From Prasinococcaceae sp. CCMP 1430 (Eukaryota; Plantae; Prasinodermophyta), in assembly GCA_013416795.1 (NCBI GenBank), contig RQSC01000757.1, positions 75,274 through 138,773 of the forward strand: a DNA stretch of 63,500 nt. Direction: 5' to 3'. The position numbers and the translations under genes were made by a program. Shown piece after piece: positions 43,805 to 48,001 of this stretch. The notes beneath the pieces were generated by a model. That model saw only the letters and a program-made list of their open reading frames with translations. It ran no database searches and was not told the DNA's origin. Position 1 is the stretch's first letter; each line of letters opens with the position of its first letter.

Positions 43805-46534
43805 TCAGGCGTCCATCGGCGGCTGCACGTAGATCGTCTTGGCGCGCCCGGGCGCGAAGCCGTTGAAGCGCGACGCCGCCACGAGCGTGTACGCCCCCAT
43901 GTTGGGAAACTCGAGCCACTCGCCGACCTCCATCTTGGGCAGCTGTGCCTCGCGTAGGATGGTATCCAGGCCATCGCAGGTGGGGCCGAACACCGTCGAG
44001 CTGAGCGCGGCGCGATCACGGGCGGCGCCCTGCGCGAAGTCCTCCGCGTAGAGCGGGCGTGCACTGAGCTCGGCGTGGTCGTACAGCAGGCAGTTCATGC
44101 TGCCATAGATGCCATCCGCGATCCAGTACTCCATGGCCATTTCGCCGCCCGCGTTGGGCCTGGCGCGGCGACCAAAGATCGGCGCCGACAGCGACGCGAT
44201 GCCCTCCGCGAAGTAGCGGCCGGGCTCAGCAATGATACGCACGCCCATGGAAGGGGGGAAGAGCTCGTCGAGGGCCGCGTCCAGGTTGGCGGCGATGGCG
44301 CCGAAGTGCTTGATCTCCTCGGGCGCCTGACCGCCGGGGAAGCCTCCGCCGACGTCGAGGGTGCGCAGGGGCGAAAGGCCAAGGTGCGCGGCCATGTCGA
44401 ACACGCGGCGCGCGAACTTGACCGCCACCACCGGCGACGTGGGGTCCGAGAGCCCGCTGCCAACGTGGAAGGCCACGCCCTCGACGTCGAGGTTGAGCTC
44501 CTTGGCGAGCTTGAGCAGCGGTTCGCACTCGCTCTCGTGGACGCCGTACTTCGAGCCCAGCTCGCAGCGCGCGCCTGGGTCGTCCGCGCGGATGCGCAGG
44601 AGCAACTTGGCCTCGGGCCACGTCTCCGCGAGCTTGTACAGCTCCGACGCCGAATCGAACGTGGTCATGGGCACGCCCGCGGCGCGCACCTGCGTCATGT
44701 GCTTCGTCGTCTTCATTGCGTTGGCGAAGACGATGCGCTCGGGCGCCACGCCGTGCGCGGTCACCATGGCCACCTCGGCGGGGCTGGCGCAGTCGAAACC
44801 GGCTCCCAGCGCGGCCATCGTTGCGAGCAAGCCCTGGTCGTTGTTGCACTTCACCGCGTAGTGCGGCTCGACGCGCGGGAGCAACGTGCGCCACATCTCC
44901 CAGCGCTCCTGCAGCACGCCGAGGTTGACCACGTAGAAGGGCTCGTCGATGCAGTTCTTGGCGATGGCAGCCTTTGCGGCAAGGGCGGACGACTCGTCCA
45001 GGGTCGCGCCCTCGGCGTACACGGCGTTGAAGCTGGCGCCCACGCGCCTGATGGTCGCAAGCGTGTTGGCGCGGGCGGCGGGACCGAAGGCGGGCGCGCT
45101 CTTGCGCGACGGCAGGCGGCTGATGGCACCGACCTCGCTCGGTGCGGCGTAGTCCTCGATGGACGAGTCGTCACTCTCGCTGGCCCACATCGAGGAATCC
45201 GCGGACGCCGGCTCCAGGCACCGGCTGGCGACGGCGCCGCACATGGAGGTGCACGTGGTGATCTGAGGCGTCACGCGCTCGAACTGATGCATGACCACCG
45301 CACCGCCGCCGGGGAGCGTCTGCACCACCGTGTCGGCGATGGCGTAGCCGGTCGGGGGGCGCAGGCCGCCGATCTCTGCGGCCAGCACCAGCGCGGCCGC
45401 CGGATTGGCAGCCACGGCAGGGTACGCAGGCGCGTCGAGGGTGATGGCGGCGGTGATGCGCTTCGGGCGGAACGCCTTCGCCGAGTTGATGGCCACGCAC
45501 TCAGGATCCAAGGCGTCCAGCTCGAAGCCCGCGACCTCGACGCTCGCATACGAGCACGACTCTTGAGGGGTGACGTGCACGGTGGAGAAGCTGCCGCCCT
45601 GCAGGCCGTTCATCGAGTAGCCGTACGGCTCGAACAGGTGCTCGTCCACGCGCTCGGCGGGGAAGATCTTGAGCAGACCGAGCGCCTCTGCGGCGGTCTC
45701 GTAGCCGCTGTTCTGCGGCGCGGCCGGGGCGCCGGCCGGACCGCCGCAGCAGGCCTTCACCTCGACCGGGTCGAGGCCGGTCATGCACACCTCGAGGGTG
45801 TAGCGGCCGCCTCCGACGGCGTGCTCGGCCGCGGCGGGTGCGCCGGGAAGTGCGGGGCGCGATGCGCAAAAGACGTGCCAGCGCAGCGCCTCCGGGTCGC
45901 TGCCCTGTTCGCCGAGCACGTACGCGCGGCTCTTCATGCCCATCTGCGAGGCGATTTCGCGCAGGCGGACCGTCTCCTCCTTCTCAAAGCAGCGGTGGCC
46001 GGGATGCTGGCGATCGCCGTTGAGGAAGCTCGCGCGCGAGTACTTCACGTAGGTGACTTCCATGCCCAGCTCGGCGACGCACCGGCGCACCAGCGGCATC
46101 GCGTTGATGAGCGGAGTCTGGCCGCACGTCTTGATCACCATGCGATCGGCGGCGACGAAGAGGCTGCTCTCCGAGAGCACGTACGCGTCGTAGACGGCGT
46201 TGGAACACGTCGAGAGGACGGTGCACCCCGCGGCCTCGAGGAAAGCGTCGATCTTGTCGCGCGGGATGCGGCGAAGGCCACCGGCGGCGCTGCGCTCGGA
46301 GCGCATCATCCTGCCTGCGGCGCCGGCTGTGCGCGCATCCGCGAAGTCGGCGTGGATCTCTAGGCGCTTCTCGCTTCCCTCGAAGAAGTCGTCCTCGGCG
46401 TCCGACGCCATGGCCGCGTCCGCGGCCGGCGCCAGGGCGGCAAGGGCTGCGGCGACGTCGTCGCCGCGCCTGTCGTGGTGCGAGACCGGCACGCTAAGGC
46501 CGGTCTCGTGCATCCCGATTCCCATGGGAGGCAT
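43805..46534 (-). CDS. SAMDC-ODC: Bifunctional S-adenosylmethionine decarboxylase - ornithine decarboxylase fusion (909 aa, uninterrupted ORF)
   Basis: N-half: FFEGSEKRLE, YVLSE/SSLF (pyruvoyl cleavage at 46169/46168), IKTCG, GYSMN, STVHVTP. C-half: EPFYVVNLG, HYAVKCN (PLP Lys at 44849-44851), FHVGSG, LDVGGGF, AEPGRYF, LYDHA, FGPTCDGLD, NMGAYT. Confidence 0.96.
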   Translation of the reverse strand: MPPMGIGMHETGLSVPVSHHDRRGDDVAAALAALAPAADAAMASDAEDDFFEGSEKRLEIHADFADARTAGAAGRMMRSERSAAGGLRRIPRDKIDAFLEAAGCTVLSTCSNAVYDAYVLSESSLFVAADRMVIKTCGQTPLINAMPLVRRCVAELGMEVTYVKYSRASFLNGDRQHPGHRCFEKEETVRLREIASQMGMKSRAYVLGEQGSDPEALRWHVFCASRPALPGAPAAAEHAVGGGRYTLEVCMTGLDPVEVKACCGGPAGAPAAPQNSGYETAAEALGLLKIFPAERVDEHLFEPYGYSMNGLQGGSFSTVHVTPQESCSYASVEVAGFELDALDPECVAINSAKAFRPKRITAAITLDAPAYPAVAANPAAALVLAAEIGGLRPPTGYAIADTVVQTLPGGGAVVMHQFERVTPQITTCTSMCGAVASRCLEPASADSSMWASESDDSSIEDYAAPSEVGAISRLPSRKSAPAFGPAARANTLATIRRVGASFNAVYAEGATLDESSALAAKAAIAKNCIDEPFYVVNLGVLQERWEMWRTLLPRVEPHYAVKCNNDQGLLATMAALGAGFDCASPAEVAMVTAHGVAPERIVFANAMKTTKHMTQVRAAGVPMTTFDSASELYKLAETWPEAKLLLRIRADDPGARCELGSKYGVHESECEPLLKLAKELNLDVEGVAFHVGSGLSDPTSPVVAVKFARRVFDMAAHLGLSPLRTLDVGGGFPGGQAPEEIKHFGAIAANLDAALDELFPPSMGVRIIAEPGRYFAEGIASLSAPIFGRRARPNAGGEMAMEYWIADGIYGSMNCLLYDHAELSARPLYAEDFAQGAARDRAALSSTVFGPTCDGLDTILREAQLPKMEVGEWLEFPNMGAYTLVAASRFNGFAPGRAKTIYVQPPMDA

Positions 46535-46598
46535 GATGTGTCTATGCGTGTACTATAGACGGTGTAGGCTGTTGTCCGCTTCTCTCACGTGGGGGCTG

Positions 46599-46892
46599 TC
46601 AGCTGGGCGTTCGAACGCACTGTGCGTGACACGGTGGCCGAGCGGGCGGTGCGTAGGAGGATTCGCAGGGGCGCTTGCGTCAGCGTCCGCCCGAGCACGA
46701 GGCCGCGCGCGACTGCGGCGCTTGGGCCGCCGCTCGCGCCCCGCGGCGCGGAGCGCGCGCCCGCGCGCGACGCACGTCCGCGTACAGGTCGCTCTTGAAC
46801 TTCTCCTCCCCCCAGCACCTGATGTCCGCCACGTCCACGCACGTCACCTGGTCCCTCCTACTATTCGCGCTACTGCCGGTACTGTCCGCCAT
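46599..46892 (-). CDS. Intron-split upstream ORF (45 aa) resembling the plant AdoMetDC leader peptide, join(46776..46892,46599..46619)
   Basis: MADSTGSSANSRRDQVTCVDVADIRCWGEEKFKSDLYAD|CVRTPS*. The intron 46620-46775 has a GTGCGT donor, a GCTGAC branch site and a CACAG acceptor. The stop lies 64 nt before the main ATG. Confidence 0.85.
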
Positions 46893-48001
46893 GTGCGCGC
46901 CAGTCGTCGCAAGGGTTCCTTCCGGCTCGTCTGTGTGGGGGCCTCCCCCGGTCCCCGCCACGGGGTGAAAACGCCGCTGGGGTTGCTCGCCGCGGCCTTC
47001 GCGGCCGATGCACAAGGAAGGAGGGAAGAGGGGGGGGAGGGTCTGACAGGTTGGAGGCGGCGGCTGCCGGCGGCGGCTCGGCCAGCCCCGCGCCGCGCCG
47101 GCCACAGGTAACGGTTTTTCACCTCTAAAGGGTTTGTAATACGTATCATTTTGCACCGTATTGATACGTGTGGTCCGCGAGTGAGGTTGCGGTTCAGACG
47201 AGAGACGTAGTGGACTCCATCGTCGGCGCGCGCGGCCCGCGCGCGCGCGCCGCGCGCCGCTCCAAACCTAAACCTGTCCCCACGCGTGTGGCTCAATGTA
47301 CAGCATTCAAATGATGTGAAATGTAGACCCTTCATCCGGATGAACCGTAAGGGGCGGCGGCAGCACGCGCGCGCGCGATCGGTTCCGAGCCCGGCCGGCC
47401 CGCGCGGCCAAAATTCGCGGAGCGCGTAGCGCCCCAATCCCAAGCCGCGTTTCTTATCAAAATTCTGTCTTTTATGACATGTAATACCTACAGATTTATA
47501 TTTGACGTAAATATGTCATTTCAAGTGATTATTCGAGATGTTTGTGCGGATGGCGACGCCCTCCTGCGCGCAGCATCCTGCGCGCGCGCGCCGCAGACGG
47601 GGGGCGCCGGCCGCGCCAACCGCGCCACCGTCGCTTCATCAAAACGAGAAGGCATCGTCGTAATAAGGGTAGGAACCCTGCGAGATAAAAGACGCATCAA
47701 AAAGCGCCTTGGGCGCACCTCTGAGGAGCGAAATGGACGGCGGGTCAACGTGCATTCCAACCCCAACTCGAGCGGGGTGGCGTCGACACTCGCGAGATCG
47801 GAATCGCGTATGCGAATGCATCAACATGTAAACCCTATACCCTAAATAACGAAATGATGTGCCTACAGCACAGCAAATACAGTACTGTAAGGTGCGCCAA
47901 CCCTAACCCTCGCCCGCGGCGGCACACCACGCGCGGGCGGCGGCGCGCGGCGCGCAGCGCAGCAGCAGCGGTGCTGCTCGGCGAGCCGCCCGCGCGCGGC
48001 G

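Follow-up and report, generated by a model that had tools for sequence, protein, structure and literature searches.

A predicted spliced leader-peptide uORF upstream of an AdoMetDC-ODC fusion gene in the prasinodermophyte alga Prasinoderma coloniale

The question raised by this locus is whether the leader of an AdoMetDC-ODC gene in Prasinoderma coloniale contains an upstream open reading frame (uORF) that becomes recognizable only when an intron is removed, and whether the encoded peptide belongs to the family of leader peptides known from the AdoMetDC genes of green plants. P. coloniale is placed in the phylum Prasinodermophyta, which is separate from Chlorophyta and Streptophyta. We analyzed 63,500 nucleotides of contig RQSC01000757.1 (hereafter the window), in which the gene and its leader lie on the minus strand. 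Our assessment is that P. coloniale very probably has a member of the green-plant AdoMetDC leader-peptide uORF family (PF08132; CPuORF homology group 3), which would be spliced at 46776/46619, translated, and used as a polyamine brake on the fusion. Below, we describe the main ORF and the uORF, compare the peptide and the intron with those of other green lineages and with strain variants, and weigh the alternatives.

The main ORF (43805 to 46534) is a single, uninterrupted exon of 909 aa that encodes an AdoMetDC-ODC fusion. Three Pfam domains were detected in it: SAM_decarbox (E 3e-67), Orn_Arg_deC_N (E 6e-70), and Orn_DAP_Arg_deC (E 2e-14), with AdoMetDC at the N-terminal side (residues 49-419) and the ODC domains following at residues 540-880. 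The protein contains YVLSESSLFV at residue 118, HYAVKCN at residue 558, and GPTCDGLD at residue 850, which we take to be the proenzyme cleavage site, the PLP-binding Lys, and the active-site Cys, respectively. It is identical to a P. coloniale protein from MMETSP (909 aa, starting MPPMG) and to residues 46-954 of the EukProt Prasinoderma coloniale protein PRCOL_00001954-RA. AdoMetDC-ODC fusions are widespread in green algae. Both SAM_decarbox and ODC domains were present in 64 of the 72 relatives of the main protein that we found, and carriers of the fusion include Micractinium, Trebouxia, Coccomyxa, Nannochloris, Cymbomonas, Nephroselmis, Tetraselmis, and Pyramimonas. The orthologues from Trebouxia and Cymbomonas (P0012, P0018, P0024, P0060) are named 'Mitochondrial 2-oxoadipate and 2-oxoglutarate transporter' at NCBI, which appears to be a propagated mistake. 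The bifunctional AdoMetDC/ODC of Plasmodium falciparum is also one polypeptide, with an N-terminal AdoMetDC, a hinge, and a C-terminal ODC, like the domain order in the window. We know of no control of the Plasmodium enzyme by a PF08132-type uORF.

The uORF lies directly 5' of this AdoMetDC-domain ORF and is divided into two exons. Exon 1 (46776 to 46892) starts with the ATG at 46892-46890 and encodes 39 aa, that is, the ATG and 38 further codons; its peptide, MADSTGSSANSRRDQVTCVDVADIRCWGEEKFKSDLYAD, starts MADST and ends DLYAD (the last residues being VADIRCWGEEKFKSDLYAD). The predicted intron (46620 to 46775; phase 0, 156 nt) has a GTGCGT donor at 46775, a branch-like GCTGAC approximately 60 nt from its 3' end, and a CACAG acceptor ending at 46620. 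Exon 2 (46599 to 46619) reads TGC GTT CGA ACG CCC AGC TGA and contributes CVRTPS and the stop. The spliced uORF would thus encode 45 aa with a penultimate Pro and a Pro-Ser-stop ending (CVRTPS-TGA), and its last 25 residues, VADIRCWGEEKFKSDLYADCVRTPS, comprise the conserved core of the family together with this ending. At two positions the core deviates from most relatives, with RCW for RPW and TPS for KPS. If left unspliced, the frame would encode 70 aa and its stop would fall inside the intron. A spacer of 64 nt (46535 to 46598) separates the uORF stop from the main AUG and contains an in-frame TAG 18 nt before that AUG. The coordinates that the initial annotation, made from the sequence alone, had assigned to the uORF, the intron, the spacer, and the main ATG were all confirmed on the minus strand.

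The intron signals had been described as typical of this genome, and counts over the window support that description. The combination GTG[CA]GT..CTGAC..YAG occurs 14 times, compared to 0.45 times in shuffled sequence; apart from the uORF intron, these units are candidate introns. The acceptors in this intron-like set are nearly all CAG. About a dozen intron-like units, on both strands, combine a GTGCGT donor with CTGAC at 15-64 nt from the end and with CAG as acceptor. The donor hexamers GTGCGT and GTGAGT are found 60 and 7 times in the window, respectively.

The region upstream of exon 1 (46893 to 47060), the presumed 5' leader, lacks AUG codons and has a pyrimidine-rich tract at approximately 47040-47013. 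The start codon of the uORF is the sole ATG between 47149 and the main ATG, and the 256 nt upstream of it are free of ATG. The 611 nt that precede the main AUG contain one ATG, compared to 6.3 expected from the density in the window (P 0.013) and 4.8 expected from local composition (P 0.047). The overlapping tiny uORF of the plant type is absent, as the initial annotation had stated. The uORF AUG has a C at position -3. A search of the leader against Rfam gave no family match.

Judged by its sequence, the spliced uORF is genuinely homologous to the leader peptide that senses polyamines in plants. The Pfam profile AdoMetDC_leader (PF08132) matched the spliced 45-aa peptide with an E value of 7.3e-5 and 23 bits, over profile positions 11-51 of 51. 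This is the family match that had been anticipated for the spliced product, at a score 2 bits under the curated Pfam gathering cut-off of 25 bits. Seven algal uORFs compared to the same profile were all below the cut-off (six at 14-23 bits and one with no match), and therefore the cut-off reflects a model matched here by land-plant sequences only and not the limits of the family. Using hhalign, we aligned the spliced peptide to a profile of 14 land-plant leader peptides with a probability of 94.5% and an E value of 7.9e-8; the alignment has 50% identity over 28 columns and reaches the C-termini of both sides. The unspliced frame behaved differently: the 70-aa product had no AdoMetDC_leader match in the Pfam search, and its hhalign probability with the 14-peptide plant profile was 4%. 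The earlier observation that the terminal match appears only after splicing therefore holds with both methods. A profile search recovered approximately 295 plant leader peptides, and among the matches listed identity to the peptide of the window was 38-61%, mostly in its C-terminal half, with 42-61% for plant peptides aligned over that half.

As a control for chance, we trained an HMM on six algal uORF peptides that did not include that of the window, and scored the 416 products made by every pair of a GT or GC donor and an AG acceptor in the leader. The splice at 46776/46619 ranked first, with 36.3 bits, and the runner-up, which uses the same acceptor, had 26.5 bits. Products containing exon 1 alone scored 21-24 bits and the unspliced frame scored 21.0 bits. 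Exon 2 thus adds approximately 15 bits, which are obtained from no other acceptor.

The cDNAs of the closest relatives contain the corresponding uORF as one contiguous frame, with the pattern ADLRPWGxxKFxxxxxxDMLGKPS-stop; from its end to the start codon of the orthologous fusion there are 33-64 nt. Immediately before the stop, the uORF ends in VADLRPWGVKKFAASTCQDMLGKPS in Crustomastix stigmatica, in EADVRPWGVVKFTAGTSDCLKHPS in Dolichomastix tenuilepis, in which the spacer is 64 nt and thus as long as that of the window, and in VVADLRPWGYVKYASGVVADMLGKPS in an alga represented in Logan. The peptide of the window fits the 25-residue register of these relatives in its spliced form only.

The strongest comparative evidence is genomic: in the DNA of three other green lineages, the uORF has an intron at the position predicted in the window. 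At the Cymbomonas tetramitiformis locus (L018), the frame reads EDIRLDGHEKYTAECFD, then a 102-nt intron starting GTGAGT and ending CAG, and then CVRKPS-stop. At the Micractinium conductrix locus (L021), it reads AELRPWSVAKFSAGFCD, then a 310-nt intron with the same GTGAGT donor and CAG end, and then CVKKPS-stop. In the liverwort Riccia sorocarpa (L022:1490-2130, CM100794.1), the small uORF reads AAYSN, then an intron bounded by GTAAGT and CAG, and then CVRKPS-stop; the Riccia leader also carries the classic tiny uORF (ATGTTATAATG). In all of these, as in the window, the intron is in phase 0 and is followed by six codons, the first of them for Cys, and then the uORF stop. Two read-through gene calls on Chlorella-like contigs (P0099, P0102) have the same codon boundary. 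The conservation of the peptide that had been proposed from the window alone is thus borne out at its C-terminus, where CVRTPS parallels CVRKPS and CVKKPS after an identical intron boundary. Because the phase-0 intron is common to Prasinodermophyta, Chlorophyta, and land plants, its position is probably ancestral, as far as can be judged from these sequences.

Other members of the family vary in the intron, the core, or the ending. In an AT-rich green alga (L019:1994-2340), the same uORF precedes the fusion and a 155-nt intron lies elsewhere, in phase 1 after EEIRPWGA; the core of this uORF has PF in place of KF. Some algal leader peptides (P0096, P0097, P0101) end in DCLKKPK-stop, with Lys as the last residue and the penultimate Pro kept. 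The gene downstream of the Riccia uORF encodes 824 aa and is annotated with both AdoMetDC and ODC domains, so the fusion may persist in a land plant; the start of this gene is the part contained in the locus examined, and a merged annotation of two genes is the alternative.

We compared the window with eleven contigs from wild or cultured strains. The 138 nt of the uORF exons had no variable sites. In the 156-nt intron five columns varied, through three SNPs and one 2-nt indel, and the spacer had one SNP. At the rate of the intron, 4.4 changes would be expected in the uORF exons versus the 0 observed (Poisson P ~0.01). In the main ORF, variation amounted to 0.62 per 100 nt; 11 of the variable sites are synonymous and 6 are nonsynonymous. 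The 2-nt indel would break any reading frame running through the intron. The central claim of the initial annotation, a spliced, conserved-peptide homologue of the plant AdoMetDC small uORF upstream of a fusion, is therefore supported by the profiles, the intron position, the cDNAs of relatives, and the variation among strains, with the splicing itself predicted from the sequence.

Near-identical contigs (~99%) were found in Tara and other marine metagenomes, and in environmental strains the upstream leader is identical or nearly so up to 47060. At that position similarity to the environmental contigs stops abruptly; downstream, the match to one contig (L001) reaches approximately 42139, and the other contigs are approximately 4.9 kb long. 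These abrupt ends suggest strain-variable or repeated flanking DNA. When JGI metagenome contigs were scanned for exon 1 with a degenerate pattern, only two out-of-frame chance matches in bacterial sequence (L006, L007) appeared. An exact protein-cluster look-up of the long upstream-extended frames gave no entry, and a look-up of the MMETSP protein (P0075) gave no transcript. The single hit (P0073) to the 45-aa peptide in a set of 5.8 billion proteins was rejected as evidence. Its contig (L005:1-1102, from ENA, low coverage) shares 267 nt with the window (47012-46746) between unrelated flanks, of which one is bacteria-like and encodes an MlaC domain and the other is GC-rich, and is most likely an assembly chimera.

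The foremost alternative is that the published gene model is right. This model (PRCOL_00001954-RA; P0074; 46552-46892 of the window, minus strand) treats exon 1 as the first coding exon and splices 46776 to a TATAG acceptor at 46553/46552, within the spacer. The result is a protein of 954 aa with the N-terminus MADST...DLYAD-YTHRHI-MPPMG, and there would be no separate uORF, or this isoform would be dominant. The EukProt entry has exactly this joined structure and the donor is common to both models. In addition, the TATAG acceptor has its own GCTGAC approximately 46 nt upstream, at a place where it overlaps the uORF stop codon, and by signals alone the 954-aa model is therefore not absurd. However, the model puts CVRTPS-TGA inside an intron, yet CV[RK]KPS-stop is found at the same boundary in Cymbomonas, Micractinium, and Riccia, and the CVRTPS-TGA stretch is invariant among strains. 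The annotated N-terminus (P0074:1-60) has no Pfam match, the protein derived from MMETSP begins at MPPMG, and in the cDNAs of relatives a stop separates the uORF from the main ORF, with no parallel to the 954-aa structure. TATAG is also atypical for a window in which the intron-like acceptors are almost all CAG. Because gene predictors favor an open frame, an artefact of this kind would be expected. We therefore consider it quite unlikely that the published model is right. The N-terminal join in PRCOL_00001954 is probably an annotation error that hides the uORF; the 954-aa form is unlikely as the main isoform and possible as a minor one.

A second alternative, that the intron is retained or that the mRNA starts downstream of 46892, would leave a 70-aa frame without the Pro-Ser-stop ending, or no uORF. 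Two Logan contigs (L016, L017) that are identical to the window begin inside the uORF intron and contain its 3' part, so they are unspliced, and the splicing in our preferred model is itself a prediction. These contigs could derive from either DNA or RNA, and they break off in sequence that is very rich in GC, a common place for assemblies to end. Retention would also have to accommodate a strain indel that would break the 70-aa frame and the loss of the profile match in the unspliced product, and neither retention nor a late start explains why the intron position is shared or why both uORF exons are invariant. We regard this alternative as very unlikely. That the uORF is a biologically meaningless chance frame is hardly credible at all. 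In its favor, DNA of 68% GC often contains frames free of stops, and the Pfam match is under the curated cut-off. Against it, the uORF is directly upstream of an AdoMetDC-domain gene; the peptide matches over its whole aligned length, up to the C-terminus and in exact register (hhalign E 8e-8); none of the other 416 splice products scores as high; other lineages have the intron at the same position; and strains do not differ in the exons.

Given the preferred reading, a spliced leader-peptide uORF, its function can be proposed by analogy with Arabidopsis AdoMetDC1, in which polyamines induce peptide-dependent stalling at the uORF stop that blocks scanning (PMC4330380, citing Uchiyama-Kadokura 2014; PMC2811004). 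In P. coloniale, the leader of the AdoMetDC-ODC mRNA would be spliced at 46776/46619 to give the 45-codon uORF. At high polyamine levels, the nascent uORF peptide would arrest the ribosome once it has reached the uORF stop codon, and this arrested ribosome would keep scanning ribosomes from the main AUG 64 nt downstream. Because both decarboxylases are fused in the main ORF, the same brake would act on both products, lowering the production of putrescine and decarboxylated SAM together. In the absence of an overlapping tiny uORF, the main AUG would presumably be reached by leaky scanning past the uORF AUG, with its C at -3, or by reinitiation. A mammalian AdoMetDC uORF (MAGDIS) is similar in the mechanism proposed here, with polyamine-dependent stalling at its stop repressing AdoMetDC translation (PMC4330380). 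In contrast to the uORF in the window, it has six codons, an unrelated sequence, and no penultimate Pro (PMC2811004), and it is of independent origin.

The uORF in the window resembles the land-plant small uORF (S-uORF, as in Arabidopsis AdoMetDC1) in several respects. Both are in the leader of an AdoMetDC-domain gene, have a length of approximately 45-55 codons, and share the C-terminal core [DE][DE][IV]R..G..KF.S..Y..C.R.PS-stop with its penultimate Pro; the main ORF is intronless, and the phase-0 intron six codons before the stop is as in Riccia. The two differ in that the window has no overlapping tiny uORF, an unrelated N-terminal half, Cys-Trp in the core compared to plant Pro-x-Gly, Thr compared to plant Lys before Pro-Ser, and a main ORF that also carries ODC. 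Function is assigned to the P. coloniale uORF by analogy. Introns of AtSAMDC genes have been reported within uORFs (PMC5745906).

The algal uORFs in the literature belong to the same family. Hayden and Jorgensen reported uORFs of the AdoMetDC family in Ulva and Chlamydomonas in 2007 (PMC2075485). For Chlorella and prasinophytes, Ivanov, Atkins and Michael described small uORFs of AdoMetDC genes that lack the tiny uORF in 2010 (PMC2811004); the tiny uORF is confined to land plants and Chlamydomonas/Volvox. The same paper finds AdoMetDC uORFs in green algae and a Pro at the penultimate position in nearly all of them across the family. The tiny uORF is thus missing in Chlorella, prasinophytes, and the window alike. 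The same uORF precedes the same fusion as in the window in orthologues from the Chlorella clade and prasinophytes (Micractinium, Cymbomonas, Crustomastix, Dolichomastix). Unlike our analysis, these two papers do not cover Prasinodermophyta. The novelty of the combination was overrated in the initial annotation: AdoMetDC uORFs without a tiny uORF have been known since 2010 (PMC2811004), and the layout of fusion, uORF, and intron is widespread. The literature searched contained no published green-lineage AdoMetDC-ODC fusion under a leader uORF and no conserved uORF intron position. It likewise contained no functional study of any algal family member.

The value of these findings is in evolution and in the correction of an annotation, and not in a new mechanism. 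They call attention to a probable mistake in the gene model published for P. coloniale, and they illustrate that intron-split uORFs escape ORF-based scans of genomic DNA. The leader peptide, the intron position, and the link to the fusion are all present in Prasinodermophyta, a deep-branching phylum apart from Chlorophyta and Streptophyta, and therefore all three probably trace to the ancestor of Viridiplantae, as far as sequence comparison indicates. A more far-reaching proposal, which we think unlikely, is that polyamine control in the last common ancestor of all green plants already relied on a single uORF-gated AdoMetDC-ODC fusion, whose uORF had its intron six codons ahead of the stop, and that the intron has persisted for more than 1 billion years because it is used. 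Splicing to CACAG would then give the sensor uORF that stalls ribosomes, splicing to the in-frame TATAG would extend the enzyme at its N-terminus, and retention would leave a 70-aa uORF that does not stall them, so that the leader could be switched between three states. If this were true, a layer of splicing would be added to polyamine feedback in a lineage without antizyme. To our knowledge, green plants have no antizyme, and so in species with the fusion the uORF would be the route by which ODC output comes under polyamine feedback.
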